Assembly (NCBI GenBank): GCA_037379345.1 | Contig: CM074518.1 | Location: 23,932,001-23,996,000, forward strand | DNA: 64,000 nt | DNA from: Perna viridis | Taxonomy: Eukaryota | Direction: 5' to 3' | Shown here: piece after piece, positions 11,507-57,297 of the stretch | Layout: each line of letters begins with the position of its first letter | Numbering within the stretch: the stretch's first letter is position 1 | Notes under the pieces: generated by a model | What the model was told of the DNA's origin: nothing | Database searches by the model: none | What the model saw: the letters and a program-made list of their open reading frames with translations, nothing else | Translations under genes and position numbers: made by a program

Positions 11507-11549
11507 CCGTTTGATTTATGTTTGATTTCAATATACGTATGCATTGTAG

Positions 11550-20438: not shown

Positions 20439-20543
20439 CCTTTCCCTGTCGACATCTTCTACGACTTGCATAGAACAATCCAGCAGAAAGAATTCCCGAG
20501 CCAACGATGTATATTAACACAAACTTCACATTTGGCACTTTTC
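20439..20543 (-). CDS. Ig-receptor gene 1, transmembrane exon (type A)
   Basis: ttattgtcag acceptor, gtaaat donor, 105 nt, phase 1/1. Reads GKVPNVK-FVLIYIVGSGILSAGLFYA-SRRRCRQGK. Confidence 0.8.
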
Positions 20544-21162
20544 CTGACAATAAAAAAAATGTTACACACTAAATGTCTGATTTCATCATGAAAGGTAATC
20601 GAACTTTAAATATTGTTTTTTATTTTTTACACCGATAAGTACATAATTGGTTGCTAAGCAAGCAAATTCAATATTTTATTCGCAACATGCTGACTATTTT
20701 AGAAAAAAATCATCGTGCGTGTCGTTCCTACGACGTTTCCAGGGAGATTTATGCGTCTGTTTGTTGTTTCATAGACAAAATTATGTTACGTTATATGTGG
20801 ACCTGGTAACATATATACTGCATTTTCTAAAGACATTATTACAAACAAGCAATGCTATTTTCATTATTATTTTCAGAAGTCGAATAATAGAAACTAGATA
20901 TTGTGACAAACGGACGTTTAGTACGATCGCTTTTTACTGTGCAAATTCAGGATAAAATTCTGTAAAGGCTGTAGAAACATATATTCCCTATATACCTCGG
21001 GGATAAAGGTACTTAATCTGAAAATCATGGACTGATGAACACTGAGGTAATATCTAACAAACATATACGACGGGTGGACATAACATTGAAATGGAAAATA
21101 TATTGATTTTCTTTTATTTCAAAATACGTCACACTGTGTTACACTGTATATATAATACATAC

Positions 21163-21204
21163 CATTTAGAACCACTGTTGTTGTTATGTTTGTTGATATT
21201 ACAC
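21163..21204 (-). CDS. Ig-receptor gene 1, second Thr-rich stalk exon
   Basis: aaag acceptor after a T-rich tract, gtatgt donor, 42 nt, phase 1/1. Reads GVISTNITTTVVLN (NIT sequon). Confidence 0.65.
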
Positions 21205-21902
21205 CTTTATCAACATAAAAAGATATAACTTTATTTTGATACATAAATATGTGTGTGTATGTGTATGCATGTGTGTGTATGATATAATTATTTGGGTCAA
21301 CTTTTGTAATCAAAACGCCTTGTACTATTTACCTTGTTTTGCTTACTTAAAGAAAGAGGATTTTTTTTTTTGCTTTTTAGTTATATGTGTATGCATCTCA
21401 GTATGAATCGGTCTAACTGATAAAACAATTAAATGTTGTCTGGTTCACGTTCAGCCATAATTATGGTATGCATATTCGGGATTATAACAAAAAACAAGTT
21501 TGTTATAATTAATTTGAAATTTAAAATGAAAAAAAAAATGTTAGGAAATAGGAAAATACAAAATTGAGAGAGCCACCGGAGAATGACAGAAATGTGTTGG
21601 GGCGGTCAACTTTGCAATCTGATGAGGTTTTTTTTAGAGAACTCTACAATATGGGTGTGTTGATTTAGCGTGGCGCACTTGGAATAAAAATGATCAAATA
21701 TCGATACAACCTACGAATAAAAGGCTCCCCAATTTGATCATCTTAACTAAAAAGTTTATTTCAAGTTAAGGTCTGTGCTGGCCTCTATTGTATTACTTCT
21801 AAGTCGACTAGTAAGTGTAACAAGTAACACGATCGAGTAATATCAGAACTGTTAAGGTTTGTTTCTGTACGTATTATCATGATATCATTTTTCTTTATTT
21901 AC

Positions 21903-21956
21903 CTCTGGTACTTTGATTCGTGGTTTCATTGGCTGTCTGTGTACAGTTGATTTCAT
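21903..21956 (-). CDS. Ig-receptor gene 1, stalk exon
   Basis: aacag acceptor, gtaaat donor, 54 nt, phase 1/1. Reads DEINCTQTANETTNQSTR; conserved in all three units. Confidence 0.8.
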
Positions 21957-22279
21957 CTGTTAAATATTGCAGTAAGGAGGTCATTTTCAAAACAAAGTTA
22001 AGTAAATGTATATGAAAATTAAAGACTTGAAATTGTGAGTCCAAATTTAAGTACGCAGATACAGTTTAAAAACAATTATCATTTTGGCAACAGAGTAGGC
22101 GGTTCAGAAAGGGGGTTCTAGGCTAATATTCGCCCAAAATAAAAAAAAAATCCCATGAAACCAAAAAAGAGTCCAATTACCGGATCATATCCTATAGATC
22201 CGCAACGGGAGTCTAGTTATTGAATATTTGCCACGTATGACAAGAGAAATTAAATGTGTATACCAGTAAATGTATTGAC

Positions 22280-22558
22280 CTTTCATTGTTACGTTAAATG
22301 TTTGTACTGTTAATGAATTATCCAAGCAGGTATAGACTCCTATGTCGTCTTGGCTCATATTTGTAAACTTCAACTCATACACTCCAATGCTGACATTAAC
22401 AATAACATCCAAATCTTGACTATTGTTCGGACCGTGTCTTCTATTTATGAATATGTTTTCATTGCCTTTAATCCACACCAATGTTTTATTGAAACCTTCA
22501 ATAGGGCAACTCAAAACCAACTGTTCTCCTGGACATAATTCTCTCTTTAATACGTCAC
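22280..22558 (-). CDS. Ig-receptor gene 1, Ig-superfamily (V/I-set-like) domain exon
   Basis: ttttag acceptor, AAG|gtcaat donor, 279 nt, phase 1/1. Motifs G-x-x-x-x-L-x-C, W-x-K, Y-x-L-x-F and D-x-G-x-Y-x-C. Confidence 0.92.
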
Positions 22559-24450
22559 CTAAAACCATGATTAGACATATGATATACAAAGTAAATTACA
22601 ATTGATATAAACAACTGTTTGTCTATTTACAACAAACACAAGACAAGATCATTATAGGAAATCTTTCAAATTTAAATACTGATGTCATATTCACTTATTT
22701 ATTTATGCAGTTCAGTAAATGCCTCATTAATTTGAAAATATCTTTGTTATAAAACACAGTGAACAATGAACTATAACAGGATTATTATACTAATTTTTAA
22801 AATTTCTTGTCTTATTCCTTCAGTAAGAATAAAAATGTTTACCTTCCAATTTTTTACCCATTATATTTGTTTATCATTGTTTAAAGAACTCACAGCATAA
22901 TCATTGCATTTAACTTATATGTTTATATATGTTTGGATTGAGTTGTCTTTCTAACCATGAGACTGATGATATCAAAAAGAACATTCCTTTGGTTTTCGTG
23001 TAATAACAAACTTAATTTGCTCGTATCCTTGAAACTTAATTGGTATTCAGTTATTATACTTTCCTCAACATCTACAATTGAAAACTAAAACACCGTTTTA
23101 ATTCAAGGTTAATATCAATGAAAACAATCTATACACGAACAATATTTAATGGATGTAGGTTTAAACAAACAACAGATCTGTTAGTAGGGAGAATACACAC
23201 CACGAAACCACAATACTCATCATTTGCCTTGTTTTCATTTTATAAATCCATATTGTCATTATTTTAGTCTTCTTAAACTCGAGAACATTTTAAAAGGATG
23301 ATTGATCCTACGTTGTTTTTATAATAGGTTTTACTCCAGTTGTGGCGAATGTTGCCCAGATTAAACTATATACATGTAGTTACTTTCTTACACGGGTCGC
23401 GCACACAATTTTGTCCCTACAGTACTGACCAGTTGCGACGGGTAATAGTAATTGTTGAGAAATATAATCGAGTTCCAATGTAACGTTCTTTATTAGTACA
23501 AGTTTAGTGATTATTGGTGATATTTACGAATGCTCATTCTTTTATATTTTTATGATATGAATAATTATGTTTGATGTGTATCTGTTATATGAAGCGCATT
23601 TACTTTGTCCCATCTATTGGTTGTACTTAGTATGCTGATTGTTTCTGTCTTTGCAATGTTGTACCGTTTCCGAAGGTCTATAATAAAACTGGCTGTAACC
23701 CATTATAACAATAGCAACATGTTTATTGTTTTAAGCCAGTCATAAACTGAATATTGATATTTGCACATATTAAGAAAATAAATCATGAAAATTTAAGCAT
23801 ACTAGACATGAATTAAATTTACAGATTTGAGTTAGTTTATCTTAGTTAATCAGACTTTTATTTTTGTAGCAATTTGTACTTACAACTCGACATTAACAAA
23901 CAAATCAAACTAAGTATTACAATAAACTATTTTTGGCTATAAAAAGTTTGGTAACCTTGGATTAATTTGTGTCACCAGTCTATTTCCCATTATGAAAACA
24001 TGCAATAATTTGTTTTAATGCCATATATGGATTTCAATATTAAGTCGGCAAAAATAGACAAAACCAAGCATTTTTCCTGTTATTTGGTTAATATTTAAGT
24101 GCTTTGACGCCATTATGACTTGATGCATAGGGTTAAGCTAATGTCATGTCATTCTTGTGGTATGTACGTTTGTTCATAGTGAGTTCAAAGAACGGGGAAC
24201 CAAGAATAAAAAAATAGCCAAAACTACGTTGTTAAATTGTCAAAAGCTCTTACTGGCCATGCTTGCTCATCTGGATGTGATTTGTAAAATATTAAAAAAA
24301 AGCTAATCAACTTAAAAGTCAGTGTTGTTTGTTCTATGTAGTAATCATGTATGGAAGTTAGCATGTCCATGTTTGTAATCCAATTTCTCTTCAGTATCCA
24401 AAATAATGAATACATGTGACTAAAATGATGTAACTTTTTTTTCTTATCGC

Positions 24451-24958
24451 GCCCCGTGCAGGTCCGGGTGTTAAAAGAATAGGCCTGCAGCAGCGCTAAG
24501 CTTGTCGTATAAGGCGACTAAATAGTGCTCAGAACGCTAGCCGGGGGCCTAGGCGCTTTGCCAACAGAGCAACTGGGATGTGTGCCCCAGATGGTGGAAT
24601 GGGGTACCCCTGGCGTGTTACATGCTGGGGTTATCAGGCTATAATACGGAAAACCTGACCGCAAACCATAGTGGTGCACCGTGTTGGGAAAGACGCAACG
24701 TTCCTCGCACGTTAAAGAACCTTGCTGTGGTATTCGATAGGAGTAGGAACCCTTGCGCTCCGCCACAGGAGGCTAAATTGCCCGAGCTTACCCATCCCCC
24801 CTCTTTCCAGTGGCAATCAAAATTTGTCGACCCTATTATCCTTGTGACCCATCCTTTTTATCGTTTCATGTTCATTTTATCATCCATTTCATTTTCATTG
24901 TCTGAATATAGCTGAAATATTGCTGCTCGGACGTTAAACCCCAACAAAAAAACAAACA
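24451..24958 (+). mobile_element. SINE-like element (copy B) in the leader-Ig intron of gene 1
   Basis: 12-bp TSD ttttcttatcgc at 24439-24450 and 24959-24970; empty sites in unit 2 (~41650) and unit 3 (~57185). Confidence 0.92.
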
Positions 24959-25025
24959 TTTTCTTATCGCATTTAACAAATGTATATTCTTAGAAATTAC
25001 AAGACGCACATTGTAAGTTGCTTAC

Positions 25026-25074
25026 CATTTAAAAGAACGGCAATTACCAATAGGTTAAGTACATAAATCTTCAT
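25026..25074 (-). CDS. Ig-receptor gene 1, signal-peptide exon
   Basis: ATG at 25074; reads MKIYVLNLLVIAVLLN|G; phase-1 gtaagc donor; upstream acceptor ttcacag; conserved in three units. Confidence 0.8.
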
Positions 25075-25370
25075 GTTGCACTGTGAAATTAAAATGACAG
25101 AAATTCATTTATTGTGTTAAACATGATGAAGTAAATAGATTTGTATTGTTTCAAGGACCGAGCCGTATTTGCTTTTTTGGGGATTTAAGTGATTTTTTTT
25201 ACAATTTATACTGTGTACTTCCACTATAAACATATTGTCAGAAATTGTTACAGGTTGCCTAAACTACTAATGGAATAAAATTAAACAATTTATATGATTG
25301 TTAGAAAAAATAACATTTTTTATTTATTCTGCAGTTTGATTTACAAAATGCATATGACAATCTCCCTTAC

Positions 25371-25400
25371 CTGTTTTCATCAGCAATTCATTATGCACTC
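25371..25400 (-). other. Putative non-coding 5' UTR exon (paralogous donors at ~42061 and ~57578)
   Basis: Conserved CAG|gtaagg donor in all three units upstream of the leader exon, which itself has an acceptor; the 5' boundary is uncertain. Confidence 0.4.
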
Positions 25401-26615: not shown

Positions 26616-27790
26616 CTAAACCTAACAGTTTTGAGGCAGTATGCGAAAAACCTCTGTCTGACCACTATGTTATATTTATGGTAATGGCGGCCATGTTTAT
26701 TGACAGATCACAAATCCCATCAGTTATACATGTATGTAGAAAGAGTGATCAAGGGAACCAAGGTTATAGCGGTAATCAAAAGAATGTAATCCAGGGACAT
26801 GGTAATCAGACATGGAAAACAGACATACACAACAAAGAACATATAGTAACTAAAATCATACATACAAAGCAACAAAAGTAAATGAGGAACTCGGACTCCA
26901 CTAAAAACTGGGAGCATAGACCAGGTGCACCGGTAGGGTAAGCGTCCTCTGCTTTTATAGAAACACCCTCCGAGTTGCTCATTAAAAGTCATGTCCGGGG
27001 TAGACAAACGAGGGAAAGAAAACTATGACCCGTTGAATAAATCAGTTTTCATGGTGCTGATGGATACACCATAACGATTCACGAGTTCATGATAACAACC
27101 ATAAATCTTCTGTAATGATGACTTCAATCTTGTAGCAACATAACCCTGTTCCAGAAGCCTATTTGTTAGAGTTCTAGCGCGATACAAAAAGTCTGCGTAG
27201 CTCTGGCATAACGTATGAGTTGTGATATGAACACTCCATACGCAGGAGCCAAAGGGACGTTGCCACAGATGAAAGGAAAATTGACAATTCTGAATTAAAA
27301 GTCATAAGGTTTGCCGTAAAGTTTGGTAAGAATACCTTAATGGACATTCGTACCAAGTTCGAAACCATTTGGTCTTTACAGTCGTGTCAGATGGTAAGCT
27401 GCTTTAAAGAAAACACATTAATTATCGCGAAAAAAGAGCAAAAAACTGCATCTTGCTAAACAAATTTATACAATTTGACCACTGATAGAACGAATCATGC
27501 TGGGCCTAAGAGTTATTGAGATATAAGTAAGAAAATATCTGTCTGACCTGTATGTTAAGTTTTGACGGCAATGTGTTTTCGACGGATCAAAAATCCATAT
27601 ATCAGCTCTGTGCAAACGAACTTAAGCAACAATAATACCAAGTTTGGTTAAATTTTGCCCAGTTGTTTCAGAGGGGAAGAGTTTTGAAAAAAAATTGTTA
27701 AGGACGGACGATGTAAGACGGAGGACGACAACGGACGCTAACTGATGGCAATAGCTTACGTAGCCCTTTGGATCAGGTAAGTTTAAAATA
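26616..27790 (+). mobile_element. Helentron-associated/pearl-like non-autonomous element, interrupted by a Naiad (paralogues ~43326-43632 and ~59225-59788)
   Basis: Internal taccaagtttgg-type repeat units, a GACG microsatellite, and the terminal agct.acgt..ccctttggatcaggtaag..taaaa motif typical of bivalve HINE/pearl elements. Confidence 0.6.
26740..27327 (-). mobile_element. Naiad 3' fragment inserted only in unit 1
   Basis: Homologous to 4953-5545; the empty site tgtatgtagaataccttaa is present in unit 3 (~59345). Confidence 0.9.
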
Positions 27791-30411: not shown

Positions 30412-32170
30412 TTGTATATTTATTTATTTATATTTATTTAGACAGGTCAAGCACATATAATACAAACATAAAATACAGTATAGATATACACATAGACATA
30501 AACGTATACAGACCAAGACATTACATGAAAAAATAGCATTGATATGAAACCTTGAAACTTGTCAAGGATAGCCCATGAAGCCATATCTATAAAAAAGGCT
30601 GATTTCCCATGGGGTCCTTAAAAAGAAAAGAATACATGAAAAACACTTGAATCTACACACGAAGCATTTCACATTTCCTAAAATATTAACAGTTTATGTA
30701 AATACATTTTTTTATATAAAAAGTGACATTTTGTAGTTAAAAATAAATTAATTCATTTTCTTTTCTCATTTTGGTTCTTCCTTTCTAACAAGTTTAACTT
30801 CAGTTTTGAAAGAATTTGGGTTTGTTGTATTTTTAACAGTAAGTGGTAATTTGAACTTTAACAAGTAGGCTTCTGGAACAGGGTTCATATCACAACTCAT
30901 ACGTTATGCCAGAGCTTGCCGAAACTACGCAGACGTTTTGTATCGCGCTAGAACTCTAACAAATAGGCTTCTGGAACAGAGTTATGTTGCTACAAGATTG
31001 AAGTCATCACTACAGAAGTTTTATGGTCGTCATCATGAACTCGTGGATCGTAATGGTGTATCCATCAACACCATGAAAACTGATTTATTGAACGGGTCAT
31101 AGTTTTCCTTACCTCGTTTGTCTACCCCCGGACTTGACTTTTTATGAGCAACTCGGCAGGTGTTTCTAGAAAAGCAGAGAACGCTTACCCTACCGGTGCA
31201 TCTGGTCCATGCTCCCAGTTTTTAGTGGAGTCCGAGTTTCTCATTTTCTTTTGTTACTTTGTATATATGATTTTAGTTACTTTATGTTCTATGTTGTGTA
31301 TGTCTGTTTTCCATGTCTGGTCTTTGTCCCTTACATTCTTTTGATTACCGCTATAACCTTGGCTCCCTTGATTACTCTTTTGTATTAGTAGAACATGAAG
31401 AGCTATAACAAAATAACCGAACTGGTAAATTTATCAAGGTAAACCGAAAACAGATTATACAAATGGGATGTCAGTTTTTTCAAATGTCAAAAAGAAGGTT
31501 AAAAAACTTAATGGTAATTTGTTCCAAGCATGATATATGAAACTGTCTTTACTACATAACTTACAATTAGGTATACTATAATTTAAACTTGAAGCACCCC
31601 TTGTATTTCCTTGATTCATTTTGAAATTTTCACACAAATATTAAGTTGCAGTACAATGGTAGATGTTAAAAACAAGATCTAATTCTAAGTTGGTTCACTG
31701 TATCTGGCACCGAAAGCAAATTGACACTGTTATTTTGTTTTCTTCAAACTTTACGCTTGTTTTGGTCCAGGCCGTTAATAAACCTAAAAACTTTGTTTTG
31801 CAAGATTTGTTGCAAATCTTGGGCAATCCCACCCCTAAACTACTGTACCAAGGGGCACATGAATAGTCAAAATAGCATTGTATCAAAGAAGTTGGCAGTG
31901 TTATTCTATATCTATTTATTCTATATCTGGAATCAAGACATTTAGCATTCTTATATAACATTTCAATCTTCCATTGACTTTAGAAAAAATATTTGACACT
32001 AATGTTTCAAAGTTCAAATTATTATCAATATAAACTCCGATATATTTGACAATATCTGTAGTTTTAATTATATGATCATTACATTTAACAGAGAAAATTG
32101 TGATTTGTTTGATTTTTTTCTTTTGGGGCCAATTACCATACATTCGCTTTTACCTAAATGCAATGCTAAT
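30412..32170 (-). mobile_element. Degenerate CR1/L2-group LINE 3' part (paralogues ~47118-48190 and ~63172-63589), split by a Naiad insertion
   Basis: KY(I/L)GVYID.NLNFE.LVSNI.SKVNGRLK and TSLIQCYFDYSCAPWYS; (aaat)n-like 3' end near 30420. Confidence 0.7.
30854..31511 (+). mobile_element. Naiad 3' fragment plus about 130 bp of captured flank, bounded by a 10-bp TSD
   Basis: TSD tggtaatttg at 30844-30853 and 31512-31521; a single copy at the empty site 47547-47556; the same 5' junction occurs at 63590. Confidence 0.9.
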
Positions 32171-33104
32171 TTATGATCAATCACCCAGTCTGAACACTGC
32201 TCTAACACACTTCCTAATGTGTTTGATATTACATTTGGATCTATATGTTAATATTATTTTATTAAAGTGTCACCATCGTTTACATTACATATTACATATC
32301 AATAAATGAGCATAGTTATCGTAAAATATGCCAGCCGATAACAGGCGATAACGGCTTATGAGACACTACGAATCTAACAAACCACAGTAAGCAAGATGAA
32401 AAAAAACCAAATTATTGTCTTATGTTTGTATATACAAATAATCGATGTTTGTTTGAAAGTGGTGAGTAAACAGTACAGTCATGTAAGTTTTAATCTAATT
32501 TCTTTAAAATACAGTTATCAATGGCCAACATCTACATGACATAATTCCACTAGGCTATTTCTGTGTAGTGGGTTTCATCCTCATCTGCGTTTGCTACGTC
32601 CTTTAAATGATAAATAAAATGAGGGGCTTAAAATCTAACATGAATGGGCTGTACTGTACATTTTAGTATGACCTTCCTTTGATGATATTATAATTAAAGT
32701 ATTACCGACATCCTAGGCGGAAGAATTTTATGATATATGCATAGTACAGACAAAATCAAAGTATTACTAATTACTAGCTTCCAAAACTTGATATTGGTTT
32801 ATATTGTGTGATAGGCAATATACATTTGAGTCCTTTTCAGTTCCTTGTTTAAAGCCACTTTAACTGTAAAGAAAGAACTGACTAGTTGAACATGTACGTG
32901 ATCCCTTGCAAAATGGAAGATCCAATGTTATTTTTTTAAGAGGTTATTGGTTTTTTACTTTAATTGATGCCAGAAATTACACAAATAATAACTAATACAG
33001 CATAACAATTTGCTTTCGTAATTATTCCCAGAGGTTTTTTAAATTATCATTATATTTTAACACAGTAAATACATTTCATTTATTGATACTCGAAACGTTG
33101 TTGT

Positions 33105-33520
33105 TGTATTGCGCTAGACTTCTTCTGGAACGGGGTCATGTTGCTAGAAGATCAAAGGATTGAAGTCATCACAACAGAAGTTTTATGATCGCCATCATGA
33201 ACTCGTGGATCGTTTCGAGGTATCCATCTGCACCTTGAAAACTGATTTTTCATCGTGTTATAGTTTTCCTTTCCTCTTTTGTCTACCCTGGAGTTCACTT
33301 TTTATGAGCAACTCGGCGGGAGTTTCTAGAAAAGCAGAGGACGCTTACCCTACCGGTACACCTGGTCCATGCTCCAAGTTTTAGTGGCGTCCGAGTTGCT
33401 CATTTGCATTTGTCACTTTGTATGTATTATTTTAGTTGCTTAATGTTCTTTGTTGTTCTTTGTTGTGTATGTCTGTTATCCATGTTTGGTCTTTGTCCCT
33501 GGATTGCTTACTTTTGATTT
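33105..33520 (+). mobile_element. Older Naiad 3' fragment (paralogue ~49985-50400)
   Basis: KSSQQKFYDRHHELVDRF plus the 3' UTR hairpin; present at the equivalent position in two units. Confidence 0.85.
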
Positions 33521-33652
33521 NNNNNNNNNNNNNNNNNNNNNNNNNNNNNNNNNNNNNNNNNNNNNNNNNNNNNNNNNNNNNNNNNNNNNNNNNNNNNNNN
33601 NNNNNNNNNNNNNNNNNNNNNNNNNNNNNNNNNNNNNNNNNNNNNNNNNNNN
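33521..33652. other. Assembly gap (132 N)
   Basis: Run of N; the paralogous site ~50393-50443 holds about 50 bp including a (TA)n tract. Confidence 1.
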
Positions 33653-34771: not shown

Positions 34772-34799
34772 CTTACGACATTTAAATAAGCGAAATTAT

Positions 34800-37348: not shown

Positions 37349-37903
37349 CCCCGGTTATTTTGTCAGCAGAGATATCATAATTACCTGCAGCTCGACTGTA
37401 ACATTGCTATTTTCTTGTATAGTTGACCTGTTACCATTTACACACATTGAGTTTCTGCAACGTTCTTCACTCACGAAAAATACAAGATATTCTTATTTTT
37501 GTAATTCAAATGAGTTACATCGTTTTACATAGTTAAAATCCAAAACTAAATGTTTACTTATCATAAATTGGATTGCACATTTTCTTTAGCAGTTATATTT
37601 AAAGTCGACGTAATAGCTATGTCAGTCCTTTGGAATTACGGAGATTTTAATTTTCTTTATTCAATCTAGCATTATTTATAAAATCTTTAGTTTGAACCAT
37701 TTTATTTTAGATATTTTCTATTTTTCACGTGTCAGCCCTACTCGTCTATTGCATGTGTTAGTTTGAGACTTTAGGGCATTTATAAAAATACAGGATTTTC
37801 CAATTCTTGAAAATAAAGATTGCTTTTGTGAGATTTCTTACGATGATACTTCACTTTAAACATCAATTCTACAATGTAAAACGTATTTTAATTAATATTT
37901 CAC

Positions 37904-38041
37904 CAGCCGTCCAACAGGACACCAGTAGAACAAGTATTATCGTTAAAATCACCACACCAGAGCATATAATAAGACAAAGATGGAATGTATCTAGACGTAA
38001 ATGTTCCGTGGCAGTTTCCATTGAAGATGTGTCACTGGTGC
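37904..38041 (-). CDS. Ig-receptor gene 2, stalk/transmembrane exon (type B)
   Basis: ttttag acceptor, gtgaaa donor, 138 nt, phase 1/1. Reads GTSDTSSMETATEHLRLDTFH-LCLIICSGVVILTIILVLLVSCWTA. Confidence 0.8.
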
Positions 38042-38991
38042 CTAAAATGTAAATAATATGATTTTATTTCAAAGTGAAGAATTTTGTCAATGATAATCCT
38101 TTACATGGGTTAAAAAATTAATTTCATGTTTCCGTTATCAAGTTATACATTCAAAGAATCTGATTTTTGAAATTCAAGAAGGTTATCTGTGAATATTACG
38201 ATTTCTCATCAATTTGTTCCAGACATATTTGTAAATGTTCACAATTGTTTTCATTTGGAATATAAAAGAGTACATTTACTATGCCACTATTTTTTTTAAA
38301 ACTTACATTTTAACGAAGTTTTATTGAGTCGACATTTTAAGTTGCATTTAAAGATAAATAATTTCAGAGAAATTACTAAATGGACTGATTTATTTTCTAA
38401 GTAACAGTTGCATAGTTAAATTTTACTTGATATATAACAAGATTTATTTTAGTGTCTTTTCAATAACTACATATGACATTTACACTTTCTTATTCAAATA
38501 GTGTTATTATATCTTTATTGTTTTTTTATTACCTGTATTATCTGTAAAAAAACTCTATTTACATAAATGCTGTTATTGGTCAAATGCATCCAAAACGCGC
38601 TTTAAAAAAAAGGAAATAAAACCTGCAAAAAATGCAGTAAATGCTTACGTTTCCCTTATCTTCCAAATAAACTAAACATTCTTGCCTATTTAATTTGTCA
38701 TTCTCAACCCATATGCATGAATAATAATCCACGGCTTTTGTAGTCATATTTTAAATGACTAAGTCGAAAAAACAGCCATTAGACCTTTCTTCAACTAGAA
38801 ATGTCTCACTAAAATCATCCGAAACATAGTAATTTTCTGCAATTACATCTGTGAATTTTAAAGATATCAAGATCATTTGACTGCCATTATGATATGGATA
38901 TTTCAACACATGTTTGCTGTGAATATGTGCACGTCCATGTTTCACAATGGCAATACAGAAAACCCTGAAATATAAAAGTTCCTTTATTTAC

Positions 38992-39045
38992 CTCTGGTAC
39001 TTTGATCCGTGGTTTCATTGACTGTCTGTGTACAGTTGATTTCAT
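38992..39045 (-). CDS. Ig-receptor gene 2, stalk exon
   Basis: 54 nt, phase 1/1; reads DEINCTQTVNETTDQSTR. Confidence 0.8.
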
Positions 39046-39363: not shown

Positions 39364-39642
39364 CTTTCATCGTTACGTTAAATATCTGTAATGTTGATGA
39401 ATTATCCAAGCAGGTATAGACTCCTATGTCGTCTTGGCTCATATTTGTAAACTTCAAATCATACACTCCAATGCTGCTATTAACAATAACATCCAAACCT
39501 TGTCTATTGTTAGGACCGTGATTTCTATTTATAAATATGTAGTTATTGCCTTTAATCCACTTGAATGTTGTATTGAAATCTTCAATAGTGCAACTTAGAA
39601 CCAACTGTTCCCCTGGACAGAATTCTCTCTTTAATACGTCAC
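39364..39642 (-). CDS. Ig-receptor gene 2, Ig domain exon
   Basis: 279 nt, phase 1/1, splice sites intact; GDVLKREFCPGEQLVLSCTIEDFNTTFKWIK...DDIGVYTC...FNVTMK. Confidence 0.92.
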
Positions 39643-41714: not shown

Positions 41715-41763
41715 CATTTAAAAGATTGACAATTACCAATAGGTTAAGTACATAAATCTTCAT
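41715..41763 (-). CDS. Ig-receptor gene 2, signal-peptide exon
   Basis: MKIYVLNLLVIVNLLN|G with a gtaagc donor. Confidence 0.8.
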
Positions 41764-44700: not shown

Positions 44701-47700
44701 TCAAAAATCATAGAGAAATAACTTGCAGTAGTTTTGAACTGGTCTGGAGGAGGCATGTCAGTTTATACATTTACGTAATTTATATTTTGTTTCTTTTTTT
44801 CATTGTAACAAGGGACTCCGACCTTGTGATCTTTAGGTGTGTTGAATTGTGTAATATTTATATTCTATTATTGTTAGATTTTAATAGAAAAGGGTTGCGA
44901 TCAAACCTTTATCGCTTTTTTGCGCATTTCTAAAGTCAGAGATGTCTGGCCTCTGTATATCTAATTTTGTTTTCACCTTTAGTTTATTTTTATGTTTTCT
45001 TGAGTTTATAGGACAACTATTACTACATACCTGTGTATACGGATGTTTCGTGGGTTGCTGCAGTCTGACCTGTGGTATGAAGGTATCCTCGTCCTGAATT
45101 AAAGACCAATGGGTTGTCTTGTTCTGACATTTTCCTTCCAAGGGTTGGTGGGGGGGATGGTGGTGGGTTGCTGTCGCTTTGACAAAAACAACCGGCTGGT
45201 GTGGGAGTTGCTGTCGCTTTGACATATACACTATACCTATTCTCGTTCGTAATATTATATTATTGAGGTTCTAGATTTTATATTTTGCACCAACTACGTG
45301 ATGATACCTATATCATTTTTAATGACGCCACTTTTGTCGTGATATGATTTGTACAAATTTGCTTTAAATGTGTTAGTTTCTGATGACTCGATTAAAACTT
45401 ACTCTTATGAAAAAACAAATATTTAACAACATGAAATAAACGCAAATGATTTGAATTAAATCTGTGTTATTTTCATATAGTCATATTTTATTTATGGTAA
45501 TGTCTTCGCCCATGTCATAAAAATATATCTATCGACGTAAACTCACTTTTATATTCCTATGATGAAAACAATCAAATAAATCTAGGTATAATTTAAAATT
45601 AGGTTTTCTAAGGAAGTACATAGTATATTGTTTGATATAAATGCCTTTATTGACATTACTGGCGAGGAATCTATTAATATACATTGTACATGATCGCAGT
45701 TATTTTCCATTTTGAAATTTTGCATGAACATGTTCAATTATTTTGATGAATGTTGTCCGTCACTAACTTGAGTCCAGACTTACTGTAAAGATTTTTAAAA
45801 TATGTTTGAAAAAATTGAAAAATTTCAATTTTAGTCTGTACATGACCATCGATAGTAACAGTTGTGGTTGAAAGAGTCGCAAGGCAAGGAGTGAATAGCA
45901 TGGAATAGGAAGCATGTATATGCTCTTATCTATATTTTGTTTATTTGTTTGCATATATATTTAGTTGTGTTCTGTCATTGGTTGTGGTGTTTTTATATCT
46001 TTTTTGTCTCGTTTTTTTTTTATTTTCATTGCAGTTCCATATCTGTTCCATGCATCAGCATCCCCAGTCAATGTTCTCTAAAGTAGAAGTTTTTCTTTAA
46101 GGCAATTAAGGTTTTTAGATGTTTAGTTTTCTGTTTAGGTTACCCATGCTAGATCAATGGTATTTTGTGTATAGTTACATAAGCATCACTACAGTACATT
46201 TCAATATGTGTTCCGTGCACATGCTCCCGTAGTTACTATCGTTTTTAATAGCAGCAACCACGTTCCTTGGCGAAACATATTTCTTAAATGACAATTTGTA
46301 TGTCATTGTTTTTATTAGTCCATGTTTATCTTGGTTCCCTTGTTTTCACATTCATGAACTTATCTTATTTGATTGCAGATGTCAAAGTTTGATTTAAAAC
46401 CGTTCGATCTCAAACCATTCCATTGCGTGTGGAACTAACCATAAGTCTTAATTAGGATCACAATGCCATTTCACATTCAGGAATATCGTATACCTTTGTA
46501 ATCTTAATTAACTTAAATGTACACTATTACCTCTTTGTCAATTCATTTTAATTTTAGAAAAAATGTATTTAGTTTTCGATTTTGAAAAGATAAACCTTTT
46601 AATGATATGGAATAGGACCAAAATGTTTGTCGATTTTTTTTTCAGATTATTTAAAAAAAAATAGTACTTATGATTGAATATTTTAGATAGACAATCTAAT
46701 AATGAGCGGATCCGATCCTGGAATCCTGAATTTATGGACGCGAATTCCCGTATTTCGAATTGAAAATAAACAAATTCCCATTTTATAGGTACCCTTCGTA
46801 ATGGCAAAGTTTAAAGGTGAAGGAAACATTGGATAGAACTAAACCATACAGGTTTCATATTGCTATTAGGTTCATCTGTAAAAACAAAAAATACAGTTGG
46901 AGAGATTAATCAAGGGAACCAAAATTCTAGCGGAAATCAAAATATTGGGATCCAGGATAAAAGACCTGACAGGGAAAACAGACATACAAAACAAAGAACA
47001 TAAAATGACCAAACATAATACGTACAAAGCAAAAATGGTACATTAGCAACTCGTACTCCACCAAAAACTTACCGGTAGAGTTAGCGTCCTCTGCTTTTAT
47101 ACAACAAAAACAAATACTGTATATTTATTTATTTATATGTATTTAGACAGGTCAAACACATATAATACAAACATAAAATACAGTATAGATATACACATAG
47201 ACATAAACGTATACAGACCAAGACAATACATGAAAAAATAGCATTTATATGAAACCTTGAAACTTGACAAGGATAGCCAATAAAACCATACCTATACAAA
47301 AGTATGTTTTCCATTGGGGTCCTTAAAAAGAAGAATACATGGAAAACACTTGAATCTACACACGAAGCATTTCACATTTCCTAAAATATTAACAGTTTAT
47401 GTAAATACAGTCTGTTATAAAAAAGTGACATTTTGTTGTTAAACATAAATAAATTCATTTTCTTTTCTCCTTTTGGCTCCTTCCTGTATAAAAAGTTTAA
47501 CTTCAGTTTTGAAAAAAAATGTGTTCGTTGTATTTTTAACAGTAAGTGGTAATTTGTTCCAAGTTTGTATAGCATGATATATGAAACTATCTTTACTACA
47601 TAACTTACAATTAGGTATACTATAATTTAATCTTGAAGCACCCCTTGTTTTCACACAAATATTCAGGTGCAGTACCATGGTAAATATTAAAAAACAAGGT

Positions 47701-48399
47701 TTAATTCTGAGTTGATTCACTCTATCTGGCACCGAAAGCATATTGACACTGTCATTTTTTTTCTTCAAAATTTACGCTTGTTCTGGTCCTGGCCGAGACC
47801 AGAAACCTTAAACTTTGTTTTGCAAGATGTGCAATTCTTGGGCAATCCCGCCCCTTAACTACTGAACCAAAGGGCACATGAATAATCAAAATAACATTGT
47901 ATCAAAGAAGTTGACAGTGTTATTCTCTATCTGGAATCAAGACATTTAGCATTCTTATATAACATTTCAGTCTTCCATTGACTTTAGAAACAATATTTGA
48001 CACTAATTTTTCAAAGTTCAAATTTCTATCAATATAAACTCCGAGATATTTGACAACATCCGTAGCTTTAATTACAAATTGTGATTTGTTTGATTTTTTT
48101 TCTTTAGGGACCAAATACCATACATTTGGTTTTACCTAAATCCAATGTTAATTTATTATCAATCAGCCAGTCTGAACACTGACTAACACACTTCCTAATG
48201 TGTTTAATATTACATTTGGATCTACATGTTAATATTATTTTATTAAAGTGTCACCATCATTTACATTACATATTACATATCAATAAAAGAACATAGTTAT
48301 CGTAAAAGATTCCAACCGATAACAGGCGATAACGGCTTATGAGACACTACGAATTTAACAAACCAGAGTAAGCAAGATGAAAAATAATTATATACGATA

Positions 48400-48810
48400 A
48401 CGCTTAAAACTGTATACTAAATGAATGCATGTTATCTATAAAACATTTTATGTACAACTGGTTAAAATTGGAACCATTTTTATATTTTACATTAAAAAAT
48501 CGTGTTTGTTATCGATATCAAACAGGTAAAAAGTCCTTATTAAAAGCACAGGCATTGGTGAATAAATCTTGTCGTAAATCTGAGAAAAAAATACATTCAA
48601 ATAAATAGTGCGTCTCATCTTCTGTACTACTATTGTTACAGTACATACATAAACATTCATTCAGAGGTAAAGGTGGTCTATTATATCTGCCCGTTTCAAT
48701 TTTGACTTGTAGTGAACCAGATCTGGACAATGACAAAACACGTCTATGATTTCATTTTTTTTACAAATTTAACAGAATTTTCCGTGCAAAGATAATGTTC
48801 AAACAATCTA
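48400..48810 (-). mobile_element. Non-LTR retrotransposon C-terminal zinc-knuckle fragment
   Basis: ORF 48518-48736: IETGRY...CMYC....EDETHYLFEC, a CCHC motif of LINE ORF2 C-termini. Confidence 0.7.
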
Positions 48811-50868
48811 TGTAGACACCCACCGAGTTGTTCATAAAAAGTCATGTCCTGGGTAGACGCAAGAGGAAAAGGAAAATATGTCATGTCGAACAAATCGATT
48901 CTTATTGATGAATTACTTTATGTGAAGCAAAACATTCTCACATTTAAAAAATAAATAAGTCTTTGCTGTTTAAAAAAATTGTAACAGACAATTAATTTCA
49001 TTACGTCACGAAAAATGTAACAATAACTTTTGACATCAGATTTTTTCGGTCGTAAAAGAATCTTAGATACATTTTTCATCTACGCTGTACCTAACGCAAT
49101 GTTGCAAATTACAAGTACAAACCCTTAAAGTTTAATAGAAACGGGCTTTATTGTCCTTTGTTAATTGTGATCCACGTCGAGCGCAGTTTTGTGAAATATA
49201 AATGTATATGGTAATTTTCTTCAGTTACTATCATACTTGGATGTCCGAAAAGGTCTTCAATGAGAAAAAGCTAGCACTTAATAAACTACACTTAGTAACG
49301 TTATTGTTTTATGTTTGTGTATACAAATAATCGATGTTTGTTTGAAAGTGGTGAGTAAACAGTACAGTCATGTAAGTTTTAATCTAATTCTTTACAGTTA
49401 TCAATGGCCAACATCTACATGACATAATTTCACTAGGCTATTTCTGTATATTGGGTTTCATCCTCATCTGCGTTTGCTACGTCCTATAAATGATAAATAA
49501 AATGAGAGGCTTAAAATCTAACATAAATGGACTGTACTGTACATTTTAGTATGACCTTCATTTGATGATATTATAATTAAAGTATTACCGACATCCTAGG
49601 CGGAAGATTTTTATGATATATGCATAGTACAGACAAAATCAAAGTATTACTAATAACTAGCTTCAAAAACTTGATATTGTTTTATAAAATGTGATAAACA
49701 ATATACATTTGAGTCCCTTTCAGTTCCTAGTTTTAAGCCACTTTAACTGTAAAGAAAGAACTGACTAGTTGAACATGTACGTGATCCCTTGCAAAATAGA
49801 AGATCCAATGTTATTTTTTAAGAGGTTATTGGTTTTTAACTTTAATTGATGCCAGAAATTACACAAATAATAACTAATGCAGCATAACAATTTGCTTTCA
49901 TAATTATTTCCAGAGGTTTTTTAATTACCATTATATGTTAACAGAGTAAATACATTTCATTTATTGATACACGAAACGTTGTTGTTGTATTGCGCTAGAC
50001 TTCTTCTGGAACAGGGTCATGTTGCTACAAGATTAAAGAATTGAAGTCATCACTAAAGAAATTTTATGGTCGCCATCATGAACTCGTGGATCCTTTCGAG
50101 GCATCCATCAGCACCTTGAAAATTGATTTGTTCATCGTGTTATAGTTTTCCTTTCCTCTTTTGTCTACCCAGGACTTGACTTTTTATGAGCAACTCGGCG
50201 GGAGTTTCTAGAAAAGCAGAGGACGCTTACCCTAACGGTACACCTGGTTCATGCTCCAAGTTTTTAGTGGAGTCCGAGTTGCTCATTTACATTTGTTACT
50301 TTGTACATATTATTTTAGTTGCTTAATGTTCTTTGTTGCGTACGTCTGTTATCCGTGTTTGGTCTTTGTCCCTGGGTTGCTTACTTTTGATTTTCGCGAG
50401 AACCTTTGTATATATATATATTTGAATTTGACAGTTTTTACATCGTTGGGAATTGTGCAGACCTTTCTATATATAGATATTTCTATTTTTTGAATATTTC
50501 TTTTGAAATAACGCCTTTTTGAATAAAGAGGCAGTGCTAAATGTGTGACTAATCAGAATGTGAAGAAACCAATTGCTCATCTAATTTAATATACAACAAA
50601 TGTATTTCTTTTTCTGTTTCGGTTATAATTTTTTGGAAAATTTTCAGCATTAAGACGACTAGCATTTATGGAAATAACCATGGGAACTAATATCTACTGG
50701 TATTTCCTGACCATCTATATAGAAAAAAAACAGTCCATACAAACATATGAATTTAATTATTTAATTTGTTCATAAGCAAGGACATATGGCACCAGAGAAG
50801 ATATAAGCATGTTCGCTGAAGAAGTAGGATGCAAAAAAGAAAATGCAAGTGTAGTCTAACTTTGATAG

Positions 50869-51318
50869 AGTAATCAAGGGAACCAAGGTTATAGCGGTAA
50901 TCAAAAGAATGTAACCTAGGGACAAAGACCAGACATGGAAGACAGACATACACAACAAAGAACATAAAGTAACTAAAATCACACATACAAAGTAACAAAA
51001 GTAAATGTGCAACTCGGACTCCACTAAAAACTGGGAGAATGGACCAGGTGCACCGGTAGGGTAAGCGACCTCTTCTTTTCTAGAAACACCCGCCGAGTTG
51101 CTCATAAAAAGTCAAGTCCAGGAAAAGGAAAAACTATGGCCCGTTGAAAATATCAGTTTTCATGGTGCTGATGGATACACAATAACAATCCACGAGTTCA
51201 TGATAAGGACCATAAAACTTCTGTAGTGATGATTTCAATCTTGTAGCAACATAACCCTGTTCTAGAAGCCTATTTGTTAGAGTTCTAGCACGATATAAAA
51301 AGTCTCTATAGTTTCGGC
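50869..51318 (-). mobile_element. Naiad 3' fragment present only downstream of gene 3
   Basis: The empty site tttgatagattacg is present at ~34065-34078. Confidence 0.9.
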
Positions 51319-52021
51319 AGATTACGCAATGTTAAGCTATAGATATCCCACTGAAAATACTTATTCAATTGTTTGAAACCGCATACGGGTTTACTTTTTA
51401 TTCTAATCCCATTATCAAATCAATGAAGCCAAGTTTCAGTTGTACTTTGTATGAATGAAAGCATGGTCAATTGATGCAAAATTTAACACATTTAACATCA
51501 ATGTTACAAGGTTCTTATTGAAAATTTACCATCACCTTTAGCCATGAGTGACATATAGCCCTGCGATATTGAAGTGTTAAATTCTGCTGATCTATTCTGA
51601 AGGCAAATCTCAATGGTTATTTGAATTAGTAGAACATGAAGAGCTATAACGAAATAACCGAACTGAAAAATGTATCAAGGTAAACCGAAAAAAGATTATA
51701 CAAATGGGATGTCCGTTTTTTTCAAATGACAAAAAGAGGCTAAAAATCTTAACTTTTGAAACATCCGCATTGGCCCTGATGCAAATAGTCGATTTAGCTA
51801 GTTAAGATATTTTTTTAACGTAAAAGGGTAGGTAAGCCTGGATATTTCATCGTAACCATTCAGCATTGGAACTCAAAGCTCTTTGACACATTTTCTAAAT
51901 AAAAGACACATATCTTTCAATTAGACAATCGTTCATCTGCTATATATGTATTAGTTGAAATCCCTACATTTATTACCTGTCCAACGTAACAATATGGGTA
52001 TTGGTAAAGTGCAATACCTTG

Positions 52022-53510: not shown

Positions 53511-53981
53511 TCCCTGATTATTTTGTAGACAGAGATATCATAATTACCTGCAGCTCGACTGCAACATCGCTATTTTCTTGTATAGTTGACCTGTTACCAT
53601 TTACACACCTTGAGTTTCTGCAACGTTCTTCACTCATGAAAAATATAAGATATTCTTATTGTTGTAATTGAAATGAGTTACCTAGTTTTAAATCGTAAGT
53701 AAAATCCAAAACTAAATGTTTAATGATCATAAAATTGGATTGCACATTTTCTTTAGCAGTTATATTTAAAGTAGACGTAATAGCTATGTCAGTCCTTTGG
53801 AATTACCTGTCAGCCCTACTCGTCTATTGCATGTGTTAGTTTGAGACTTTAGGGCATTTATAAAAATACAGGATTTTCCAATTCTTGAAAACAATGATTG
53901 CTTTTGTGAGATATCTTACGATGATACTTCACTTTAAACATCAATTTTACAATGTAAAACGTATTTAAATTAATATTTCAC

Positions 53982-54119
53982 CAGCTGTCAAACAGGACAT
54001 CAATAGAACAAATATCGTCGTTACAATCCCCACACCAGAGCATATAATAAGACAAAGATGGAATGTATCTAGACGTAAATGTTCCGTGGCAGTTTCCATT
54101 GAAGATGTGTCACTGGTGC
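53982..54119 (-). CDS. Ig-receptor gene 3, stalk/transmembrane exon (type B)
   Basis: 138 nt, phase 1/1; reads GTSDTSSMETATEHLRLDTFH-LCLIICSGVGIVTTIFVLLMSCLTA. Confidence 0.8.
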
Positions 54120-54603
54120 CTAAAATGTAAATAATATGATTTTATTTCAAAGTGAAGAATTTTGTCAATGATAATCCTTTACATGGGTTATAAAATTAAT
54201 GTCATGTTTCCGTTATCAAGTTATACATTCAAAGAATCTGATTTTTAAAATTCAAAAAAGTTATCTGTGAATATTACGATTTCTCATCAATTTGTTCAAG
54301 ACATATTTGTAAATGTTCACAATTGTTTTATTGAGTCGATATTTTAAGATGTGTTTAAAGGTAACTAATTTCAAATGACTAATTTGAAACAACTGCTCTT
54401 AGATCTTTCTTCAACTATAAATGTCTCACTAAAATCATCCGAAACATAGTAATTTTCATCTGTAAATTTTAAAGATATCCAGGTCATTTGACTGCCATTA
54501 TGACATGGATATTTCAACACATGATTGTTCTGAATATTTGCACGTTCATGTTTCACACTTGCAATGCAGAAAAACCCTGAAATATAAAAGTTTCTTTATT
54601 TAC

Positions 54604-54657
54604 CTCTGGTACTTTGATCCGTGGTTTCATTGACTGTCTGTGTACAGTTGATTTCAT
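54604..54657 (-). CDS. Ig-receptor gene 3, stalk exon
   Basis: 54 nt, phase 1/1; reads DEINCTQTVNETTDQSTR, identical to gene 2. Confidence 0.8.
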
Positions 54658-54979
54658 CTGTTAAATATAACAGTAAGGAGGTCATTTTCAAAAGAAAGTT
54701 AAGTAAATGTTTATGAAAATTAAAGACTTGAAATTGTGAGTCCAAATTCAAGTACGCAGATACAGTTTAAAAACAATTATCATTTTGGCAACAGAGTAGG
54801 CGGTTCAGAAAGGGGGTTCTAGGCTAATATTCGCCCAAAATAAAAAAAAATCCCATGAAACCAAAAAAGAGTCCAATTACCGGATCATATCCTATAGATC
54901 CGCAAGGGGAGTCTAGTTATTGAATATTTGCCACGTATGACAAGAGAAATTAAATGTGTATACCAGTAAATGTATTGAC

Positions 54980-55258
54980 CTTTCATCGTTACGTTAAATG
55001 TTTGTACTGTTAATGAATTATCCAAGCAGGTATAGACTCCTATGTCGTCTTGGCTCATATTTGTAAACTTCAACTCATACACTCCAATGCTGACATTAAC
55101 AATAACATCCAAATCTTGACTATTGTTCGGACCGTGTCTTCTATTTATGAATATGTTTTCATTGCCTTTAATCCACACCAATGTTTTATTGAAACCTTCA
55201 ATAGGGCAACTCAAAACCAACTGTTCTCCTGGACATAATTCTCTCTTTAATACGTCAC
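54980..55258 (-). CDS. Ig-receptor gene 3, Ig domain exon
   Basis: 279 nt, phase 1/1; protein identical to the gene 1 Ig domain (one synonymous difference, at 54987). Confidence 0.92.
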
Positions 55259-57248
55259 CTAAAACCATGATTAGACATATGATATACAAAGTAAATTACA
55301 ATTGATATAAACAACTGTTTGTCTATTTATAACAAACACAAGACAAGATCATTATAGGAAATCTTTCAAATTTAAATACTGATGTCATATTCATTTATTT
55401 ATGCAGTTCAGTAAATGCCTCATTAATTTGAAAATATCTTTGTTATAAAACACAGTGAACAATGAACTATAACAGGATTATGATACTAATTATTAAAATT
55501 TCTTGTCTTATTCCTTCAGTAAGAATAAAAATGTTTACCTTCCAATTTTTTACCCATTATATTTGTTTATCATTGTTTAAAGAACTCACAGCATAATCAT
55601 TGCATTTAACTTATATGTTTATATATGTGTGGATTGAGTTGTCTTTCTAACCATGAGACTGATGATATCAAAAAGAACATTCCTTTGGTTTTCGTGTAAT
55701 AACAAACTTAATTTGTTCGTATCCTTGAAACTTAATTGGTATTCAGTTATTATACTTTCCTCAACATCTACAATTGAAAACTAAAACACCGTTTTAATTC
55801 AAGGTTAATATCAATGAAAACAATCTATGCACGAACAATATTTAATGAATGTAGGTTTAAACAAACAACAGATCTGTTAGTAGGGAGAATACACACCACG
55901 AAACCACAATACTCATCATTTGCCTTTTTTTCATTTTATAAATCCATATTGTCATTATTTTAGTCTTCTTAAACTCGAGAACATTTTAAAAGGATGATTG
56001 ATCCTACGTTGTTTTTATAATAGGTTTTACTCCAGTTGTGGCGAATGTTGCCCAGATTAAACTATATACATGTAGTTACTTTCTTACACGGGTCGCGCAC
56101 ACAATTTTGTCCCTACGGTACTGACCAGTTGCGACGGGTAATAGTAATTGTTGAGAAATATAATCGAGTTCCAATGTAACGTTCTTTATTAGTACAAGTT
56201 TAGTAATTATTGGTGATATTTACGAATGATTATTCTTTTATATTTTTATGATATGAATAATTATGTTTGATGTGTATCTGTTATATGAAGCGCATTTACT
56301 TTGTCCCATCTATTGGTTGTACTTAGTATGCTGATTGTTTCTGTCTTTGCAATGTTGTACCGTTTCCGAAGGTCTATAATAAAACTGGCTGTAACCCATT
56401 ATAACAATAGCAACATGTTTTTTGTTTTAAGCCAGTCATAAACTGAATATTGATATTTGCACATATTAAGAACATAAATCATGAAAATTTAAGCAAACTA
56501 AGTATTACAATAAACTATTTTTGGCTATAAAAAGTTTGGTAACCTTGGATTAATTTGTGTCACCAGTCTATTTCCCATTATGCGAAGATTCAATAATTTG
56601 TTTTAATGCCATATATGGATTTCAATATCATTAAGTCGGCAAAAATAGACAAAACCAATCATCTTTCCTGTTATTTGGTTAATATTTAAGTGCTTTGACG
56701 CCATGATGACTGGATGCATAGGGTTAAGCCAATGTCATGTCCTTATCTTGTGGTATGTACGTTTGTTCATAGTGAGTTCAAAGAACGGGGAACCAAGAAT
56801 AAAAAAATTGCCAAAACTACGGTGTTAAATTGTTAAAAGCTCTTACTGGCCATGCTTGCCCATCTGGATGTGATTTGTAAAATATTCAAAAAAAAAAAAA
56901 AACAACTAATAAACTTTAACATCAGTGTTGTTTGTTCTAGGTATACTTTGTTGTTGCTTACCATGACAACATCCAGTAAAAAACAAACAAACAAACAAAG
57001 CCTGGATAATATACTTTCAAGGGTCTTTAATCATATAACAACTAATAGATAAGTGATGACTAAAAAATGTAGTAATAAAGAATGGAAGTTAGCATGTCCA
57101 TGTCTGTAATCCAATTTCTCTACAGTGTCCAAAATGTTGAATACATTTTACTAAATTGATGTATACTAAAAATAGGAACTTTTTTCTTATCGCATTTTAC
57201 AAATGCATATTCTTAAAAATTACAAGACGCACATTGTAAGTTGCTTAC

Positions 57249-57297
57249 CATCTAAAAGAACGGCAATTACCAATAGGTTAAGTACATAAATCTTCAT
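57249..57297 (-). CDS. Ig-receptor gene 3, signal-peptide exon
   Basis: MKIYVLNLLVIAVLLD|G with a gtaagc donor. Confidence 0.8.

Follow-up and report, generated by a model that had tools for sequence, protein, structure and literature searches.

The gene cluster

The DNA considered here is a stretch of 64,000 nucleotides (nt) of the Perna viridis genome (assembly GCA_037379345.1, contig CM074518.1, here called C8; C8:23932001-23996000), with a GC content of ~31%. This stretch, the window, contains a cluster of three genes on the minus strand, each of which is predicted to encode a membrane protein with a single immunoglobulin (Ig) domain (Table 1). Coordinates are those of the window unless a contig (C8 or C3) is given, and genome-wide counts cover 46 contigs (723 Mb). 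What sets the genes apart is how they end: an Ig-plus-stalk module is joined in gene 1 to one transmembrane (TM) and tail module, TM-A, and in genes 2 and 3 to another, TM-B. Genes 2 and 3 are very likely chimeras, generated by tandem duplication with breakpoints within introns. For this origin together with the intact function of all three genes, we estimate a probability of roughly 0.7.

The gene models were predicted from splice signals, reading phase, and conservation. Each gene has six exons with AG/GT sites and a complete open frame, encoding 196 amino acids (aa) in gene 1 and 216 aa in both gene 2 and gene 3. Beyond the stalk exon, gene 1 continues into a 42-nt exon and then TM-A; genes 2 and 3 continue into TM-B instead. 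This arrangement, described in an earlier note made from the sequence alone, is confirmed in its particulars. Between genes 1 and 3, the Ig exon differs at a single base, a synonymous ACA/ACG (Thr) change, and gene 2 combines TM-B with a diverged Ig exon (27/279 nt and 16/92 aa changed). The TM-B exon has no similarity to TM-A, and tblastx detects none between the two tails; their sole likeness, seen by eye, is a short basic-Cys-basic juxtamembrane stretch. The stalk of gene 1 differs from those of genes 2 and 3 at 2/17 aa. The same note had placed all exon junctions in phase 1, which is correct for the junctions that it named and for the others in the three genes, except that the tail exon of the TM-B genes is joined to the last exon in phase 0. 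Its central proposal, that one Ig-plus-stalk module stands on two unrelated TM/tail modules through intronic, phase-compatible joints, is supported.

The genes form a small, lineage-specific cluster and encode type I membrane proteins, each predicted to begin with a signal peptide, followed by a single Ig domain, a glycosylated stalk, a single membrane span, and a short tail. The core Cys...Trp...D-x-G-x-Y-x-C pattern is visible in the translation of the Ig exon. Ig 1 matches the Pfam family I-set (Table 1), and Ig 2 matches Ig_3 (30.2 bits, cut-off 30) and ig (26.1 bits, cut-off 21.8). An AlphaFold2 (AF2) model built from seven sequences gives an 8-strand β sandwich at moderate confidence (predicted local distance difference test score, 69.5). 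In a Foldseek search this model matches at least 500 Ig domains in the PDB at E <1e-3 with TM scores of 0.7-0.8; since I-set and V-set domains are about equally represented, no specific Ig subfamily can be named. The idea that the replacements between Ig 2 and Ig 1/3 are clustered in loops is unsupported, as 10 of the 16 replaced positions lie in predicted strands of the AF2 model.

Tandem units and intronic breakpoints

Self-BLAST resolves the cluster into three tandem units of ~16-17 kb, starting at 21890, 38979, and 54591, with an overall identity of ~90%. In every unit, the exons for the signal peptide, the Ig domain, and the stalk measure 49, 279, and 54 nt, respectively, and genes 1 and 3 lie in this one array with 32.7 kb between them. 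The unit boundaries cut through the genes (Table 1). Unit 1 ceases to be homologous to units 2/3 after the first 13 nt of the intron that follows the stalk exon, at 21890|21889 and 54591|54590, in agreement with the earlier note, which had put this end a few bases past the stalk donor at ~21890.

The genome-wide count of exons that the note had suggested gives four copies of the Ig exon, two of TM-A, and four of TM-B. The fourth Ig exon belongs to an older paralogue, P, 48 kb above gene 3 and 78 kb from gene 1, and the second TM-A lies 5 kb downstream of the Ig exon of this paralogue. Gene 1 and paralogue P are colinear for ~14 kb across position 21890, at 75-83% nt identity. Thus, the order Ig-stalk-42-nt exon-TM-A is the older one, and 21890 marks the edge of a younger array. 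Paralogue P, in which no signal-peptide exon was found and whose tail stops early, is probably a pseudogene.

The two further copies of TM-B (51-53% aa identity) are located 16 kb below the window and on contig C3. Both belong to genes of another kind, here called Q-type. In these, a signal-peptide exon that matches the one in the array genes at 13/15 aa is followed by an Ig-like exon of a different sort, by TM-B, and by a pair of tail exons. The two Q-type genes are themselves ~90% identical, including their flanks, on different contigs, which indicates a recent inter-chromosomal duplication of the whole gene. Both parental architectures therefore stand independently in the genome, the A-type in gene 1 and paralogue P and the Q-type at the C8 locus and in the C3 copy, and the boundary of the repeat unit sits in introns of these two different parental genes.

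The second parent is also recognizable at the junctions. The sequence of units 2 and 3 immediately past the breakpoint aligns with the Q-type Ig exon, its acceptor as well as its body, which puts the second breakpoint 14 nt ahead of this exon in a Q-type gene that stood upstream of gene 1. This exon persists in the introns of genes 2 and 3 as a relic, whose HMMER matches to the Q-type Ig exon contain stops (Table 1). Both copies share a stop at the same codon, and a 492-bp difference distinguishes them. In the chimeras the acceptor of the relic is only 27 nt past the stalk exon (measured in gene 3), which is too close for an intron, and the relic is consequently not spliceable. A transcript that ran through the stalk donor would encounter a stop three codons later.

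A further trace is present at the top of the array at ~69862, ~5.9 kb past the end of the window. Here, promoter-like sequence directly abuts the region that holds the first tail exon. It corresponds to the stretch ~70 nt ahead of the signal-peptide ATG, and its identity to the equivalent stretches of units 1-3 is only ~80%. This older copy lacks signal-peptide, Ig, and TM-B exons, and it would represent the own promoter of the Q-type parent.

The origin that we regard as very probable started from an ancestral gene arranged as gene 1 is today, with signal peptide, Ig, and stalk followed by the 42-nt exon, TM-A, and a short tail. Upstream of it stood a Q-type gene with a related signal peptide, a different Ig domain, TM-B, and an acidic tail with a tyrosine motif. 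A tandem duplication, repeated later, with one breakpoint in the post-stalk intron and the other before the Q-type Ig exon, set TM-B and the tail exons downstream of the copied signal-peptide, Ig, and stalk exons, and genes 2 and 3 arose as chimeras. Unspliceable in its new place, the displaced Ig exon of the Q-type gene has since decayed, and the Q-type parent would have lost its own signal-peptide to TM-B exons through a later deletion. A very recent conversion of ~1.9 kb made the Ig exons of genes 1 and 3 near-identical.

It is very improbable that the array is instead an artefact of assembly, in which units 2 and 3 would be haplotypes set in tandem, or the identity of Ig 1 and Ig 3 would come from mis-polishing. 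Such an artefact might be suspected in a repeat-rich region where the sole run of N in the window falls inside unit 1 and where a tract of 98.5% identity stands out from a ~90% background. However, the units differ from each other by 6-10%, with many indels and insertions, whereas an independent 1886-bp contig in the European Nucleotide Archive (ENA; assembly ERZ13706909) aligns to positions 56190-54307 at 98.4% identity. A difference of 1.6% for the same unit, far below that between units, argues that the units are paralogues and not stacked haplotypes. In gene 3, the ENA contig extends from the Ig exon through the stalk exon and the junction into the relic, with unit-3-specific bases past the junction; the type-1/3 Ig is thereby linked to the TM-B-side junction in a second assembly. 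In addition, the junction copies at 38979 and 54591 are unlike each other, the 492-bp deletion included. The two flanks of the gap have colinear counterparts in unit 2, 32412-33520 at 49301-50393 and 33653-34073 at 50444-50869, with order and strand preserved, and continuity of the sequence across the gap is plausible, though unproven.

Gene conversion between units 1 and 3

The near-identity of Ig 1 and Ig 3 is part of a longer tract that includes the Ig exon and ~1.3 kb of the intron upstream of it and excludes the stalk exon, in which units 2 and 3 agree against unit 1. Divergence in this tract is 0.9% between units 1 and 3, as opposed to ~6% between either of them and unit 2 (Table 1), which marks it as a recent conversion. 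Even the allelic difference of 1.6% that separates the ENA contig from the window is larger. The suggestion that the exon alone had been kept identical by selection is not supported, given a conversion of ~1.9 kb that takes in so much intron. In the ENA contig, the Ig exon has private changes and a ~37-bp patch of the unit-2 type, which is a second conversion event. We rejected the idea that Ig 2 had been converted from paralogue P, since derived states are found on both sides: at 14 of the 27 differences on that of Ig 1/3, and at 11 on that of Ig 2.

Table 1. Coordinates of the genes, units, and other features. Positions are those of the window unless a contig is named.
Feature	Position	Strand	Description and evidence
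Gene 1 exon 1	25026..25074	-	ATG and signal peptide, phase-1 donor
Gene 1 Ig exon	22280..22558	-	Pfam I-set, 24.7 bits (cut-off 23.7); AF2 β sandwich; Foldseek probability 1.0 to Ig domains
Gene 1 stalk exon	21903..21956	-	54 nt; unit alignment, splice sites
Gene 1 42-nt exon, A-type-specific	21163..21204	-	12/13 aa kept in paralogue P; AG/GT
Gene 1 TM-A exon	20439..20543	-	Membrane span and basic-Cys juxtamembrane stretch; 82% aa identity in paralogue P
Gene 1 last coding exon (predicted)	19827..19888	-	Short tail, inferred; block and acceptor conserved in paralogue P; frame check
Gene 2 exon 1	41715..41763	-	Signal peptide, 2 aa changes in hydrophobic core
Gene 2 Ig exon	39364..39642	-	83% aa identity to Ig 1 and Ig 3
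Gene 2 stalk exon	38992..39045	-	Unit alignment, splice sites
Gene 2 TM-B exon	37904..38041	-	Homology, splice sites
Gene 2 cytoplasmic exon	37385..37464	-	Phase 1 in, phase 0 out
Gene 2 last coding exon	32550..32600	-	Acidic run and THYTEI motif, then stop
Gene 3 exon 1	57249..57297	-	Signal peptide
Gene 3 Ig exon	54980..55258	-	1 synonymous difference from gene 1
Gene 3 stalk exon	54604..54657	-	Unit alignment, splice sites
Gene 3 TM-B exon	53982..54119	-	Homology, splice sites
Gene 3 cytoplasmic exon	53548..53627	-	Conservation, splice sites
Gene 3 last coding exon	49433..49483	-	Acidic run and TQYTEI motif, then stop
Q-type Ig relic, gene 2 intron	38600..38964	-	In-frame TAA, core Cys and Trp lost; E 9.6e-4, one stop (HMMER)
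Q-type Ig relic, gene 3 intron	54371..54576	-	In-frame TGA, 3' half deleted; E 6.7e-5, two stops (HMMER)
Tandem unit 1	21890..38978		Gene 1, 5' part; gene 2, 3' (TM-B) part; self-BLAST, ~90% identity to units 2 and 3
Tandem unit 2	38979..54590		Gene 2, 5' part; gene 3, 3' (TM-B) part; self-BLAST
Tandem unit 3	54591..64000, continuing to ~69862 past the window end		5' part of gene 3; self-BLAST
Conversion tract, unit 1 side	22045..23981		Ig exon and ~1.3 kb of upstream intron, stalk exon excluded
Conversion tract, unit 3 side	54746..56569		
Divergence in the tract	22045-23981		Units 1 v 3, 17/1824 (0.9%); 1 v 2, 110/1896 (5.8%); 2 v 3, 108/1787 (6.0%)
Divergence beside the tract	23982-25300		Units 1 v 3, 6.8%; 1 v 2, 7.5%; 2 v 3, 6.6%
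Assembly gap (N)	33521..33652		Repeat-rich part of the modelled last intron of gene 2; no exon touched
Paralogue P	C8:24030121-24037591		Ig, stalk, 42-nt exon, TM-A; TGA at Ig codon 10
Q-type genes	C8:23914400-23921300 and C3:19733500-19739000		Both intact

Repeats and neighboring sequences

One repeat of 400-600 bp is interspersed in the window, in many cases as inverted pairs, at 4951-5543, 26739-27327, 30880-31380, 33158-33519, 50003-50409, 50863-51319, and 63616-64000. It flanks the assembly gap and, on C8 and C3, is also found next to the TM-B exons of the Q-type genes. Another dispersed repeat, of ~500 bp (11014-11507 and 24451-24953, 89% identity; a further copy near paralogue P), is inserted in the first intron of gene 1 and is not present in genes 2 or 3. 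Long open frames resembling transposon remnants are found at 5232-7019 (-), 35372-37328 (+), and 47442-48751 (-); seven transposon-like open reading frames (ORFs) of the window gave no Pfam match at E <0.01. An Ig-like half-exon at 9215-9424 (-) has the W...Y-x-C pattern and weak similarity to Ig 2, with no Pfam match, and it has a paralogue on the + strand ~18 kb past the end of the window. Its sequence suggests that it is part of a further, different Ig gene adjoining the cluster.

Coding status of the three genes

We infer that all three genes still encode surface proteins, which would share the same or a similar ectodomain and differ in their membrane and cytoplasmic ends. Within 651 coding nt per gene there are neither indels nor stops. 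The aligned DNA of the units has 12-15 gap openings per kb, by which ~8 indels would be expected by chance in a coding sequence of this length (Poisson P ~4e-4). Together with the decay of the relic, these open, indel-free frames provide moderate evidence that the exons are, or recently were, selected to stay open.

The alternative, somewhat unlikely, is that the chimeric genes 2 and 3 are functionless by-products of the duplication, either untranscribed or else spliced into the relic or read through to give truncated or degraded products. The ratio of nonsynonymous to synonymous substitution rates (dN/dS) is compatible with such a fate: it is ~0.9 when the TM-B modules of genes 2 and 3 are compared, and comparisons of Ig 2 with Ig 1 and Ig 3 give 0.65-0.78. 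The neighboring paralogue P already has an in-frame stop, the relic supplies alternative acceptors (e.g., near 54462), and database searches returned no annotated or transcript-derived protein. However, both chimeras keep all 651 nt open with six intact pairs of splice sites over the same period in which the relic exon decayed. The second haplotype or individual represented by the ENA contig likewise has an open Ig frame, and the tail exons are conserved with those of the Q-type genes, for which dN/dS against the array copies is 0.4-0.65, over a much longer time. The divergence of the Ig exon between units 1 and 2 is twice that of the flanking introns (27/279 vs 84/1624, Fisher P = 0.005); synonymous sites share this excess, which is thus not simply due to selection on amino acids.

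Several points weigh against duplication followed by the survival of three intact genes. Across the array copies, dN/dS ranges from 0.65 to 0.9 (27 and 14 differences) and is indistinguishable from 1. In gene 2, the hydrophobic core of the signal peptide contains an Asn. Paralogue P, whose frame stops 15 codons sooner, shows little conservation of the last exon of gene 1, and there may be additional exons between those modelled. Word-index searches of protein databases, made with the frames around the Ig exon and with the Q-type Ig exon, gave genomic ORFs as the only matches, none of them an annotated or transcript-derived protein. Finally, the deletion in the Q-type parent is one additional event that the model requires.

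Relatives in Mytilus

Against 1.84 billion representative proteins, the Ig exon has one close match, a genomic ORF on the ENA contig. The remaining matches are generic multi-Ig proteins and uncharacterized single-Ig membrane proteins of Mytilus. The latter, such as XP_071122969.1 (M. edulis), XP_063400120.1 (M. trossulus), and CAC5395221.1 (M. coruscus), have Ig domains with 35-41% identity (E 6e-5 to 5e-4), and the alignment contains 22 invariant positions. They share with the P. viridis proteins the CxGE..LSC..N-T..W and D-G-Y-CL-D positions and the order signal peptide, Ig, stalk, and membrane span. Their TM and tail modules, on the other hand, are not homologous to TM-A or TM-B. The earlier note did not recognize the family, for which a distant relation (35-40% identity) to these Mytilus proteins can be traced.

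Among the Mytilus relatives, proteins with 73% identical Ig domains have either a long tail or a short tail, and these tails are unrelated. The long tail, of ~150 aa, has several tyrosines and ends in VIYENL. On M. edulis OY782962.1, at 24.44 Mb, two Ig genes share a strand at a distance of 10 kb. One encodes a 313-aa single-Ig protein, with a C-terminus of the form of an immunoreceptor tyrosine-based inhibitory motif (ITIM), and the other a protein of 213 aa; the two may be a long-tail/short-tail pair. One Ig type on unrelated tails in Mytilus as well suggests that module swapping may be a habit of the wider family.

Signalling ends and the question of paired receptors

The membrane span of TM-A has no Lys, Arg, Asp, or Glu, and a single Lys is present at its outer edge. 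The tail of gene 1 has ~29 aa, the distal part of which is not conserved in paralogue P. The TM-B genes have an 80-nt tail exon, conserved with the Q-type genes, and a last exon 4-5 kb farther on. The C-terminal motifs TQYTEI (gene 3) and THYTEI (gene 2) have the form of an immunoreceptor tyrosine-based switch motif (ITSM), and IHYSEI of the Q-type gene has the ITIM form, the ITIM consensus being [ILVS]xYxx[ILV]. In the TM-B tail this tyrosine motif is a single copy behind an acidic run, for which a YxxΦ sorting signal is an equally good fit. The TM-B end would bear a C-terminal tyrosine motif usable for signalling or sorting, and the TM-A end would have no conserved one.

These ends raise the possibility of a true paired-receptor system, in which genes 3 and 2 would be inhibitory through the tyrosine motif, gene 1 would be their short-tailed counterpart, and conversion would keep the ectodomains matched. 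A mollusc would then have built a pair independently, by placing a shared Ig domain on an inhibitory tail of the ITIM/ITSM type or on a short tail that is non-signalling or adaptor-dependent. Several features are in keeping with it: Ig 1 and Ig 3 are identical in protein through recent conversion, the TM-B tail ends in TxYxxI and the Q-type tail in IxYxxI, which fit the ITSM and ITIM consensus, respectively, and in the distant Mytilus relatives one Ig type is found on a VxYxxL long tail or on a short tail, with the 313-aa and 213-aa genes of M. edulis only 10 kb apart. A charged residue inside the membrane span, used for pairing with adaptors, is a hallmark of activating partners. The TM-A span lacks such a residue, nor is an adaptor known. 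The cluster has the linkage and the near-identical ectodomains of paired receptors, but its short-tailed member is without the charged TM residue of an activating partner. Moreover, the single motif suits sorting as well as signalling, there are only three genes, and the conversion, covering 1.3 kb of intron, need not have been selected. We regard a paired-receptor system as doubtful. The likeness to paired receptors drawn in the earlier note therefore holds for the layout (linkage, ectodomains, differing ends, tyrosine motif) and fails at the uncharged TM-A. Its broader reading, an evolved recognition system, is not supported by a genome with four copies of the Ig exon, one of them with a stop, and two intact Q-type genes. 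No description of paired Ig receptors in bivalves was found in a search of the full-text literature. If the tyrosine tail is inhibitory, the origin of paired-receptor logic outside vertebrates would become testable with only three genes, and if the system is truly paired, the long-tail/short-tail logic in Mytilus would make pairing general to a mytilid family of immune receptors.

Comparison with known systems

As chimeras formed by duplication, the genes offer an unusually complete record of how a receptor gene gains a new signalling end. The breakpoints can be placed to the base, and the parental types are still present; the record also keeps the decaying displaced exon, the probable deletion of the parent gene, and the later conversion that re-matched the ectodomains.

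The vertebrate paired receptors (KIR, LILR, SIRP, CD300, and the fish NITR) resemble this cluster in having linked genes, Ig ectodomains matched by conversion, ends that differ through duplication or exon shuffling, and one end with a tyrosine motif of the ITIM/ITSM form. There is no sequence kinship with them beyond the generic Ig fold. In contrast to these systems, the P. viridis cluster has one tyrosine motif, an uncharged short-tailed TM, and three genes instead of a diversified family.

The closer likeness is to chimeric genes generated by tandem duplication with intronic breakpoints, of which the locus is a clear member and a clean case of exon shuffling. As in other such chimeras, the joined exons are in phase 1, both parental types are identifiable, and the displaced exon is left as a relic. 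The locus differs from them in that the breakpoints are unusually near splice sites (13 and 14 nt) and in that the chimera was duplicated again and then partly homogenized with its parent.

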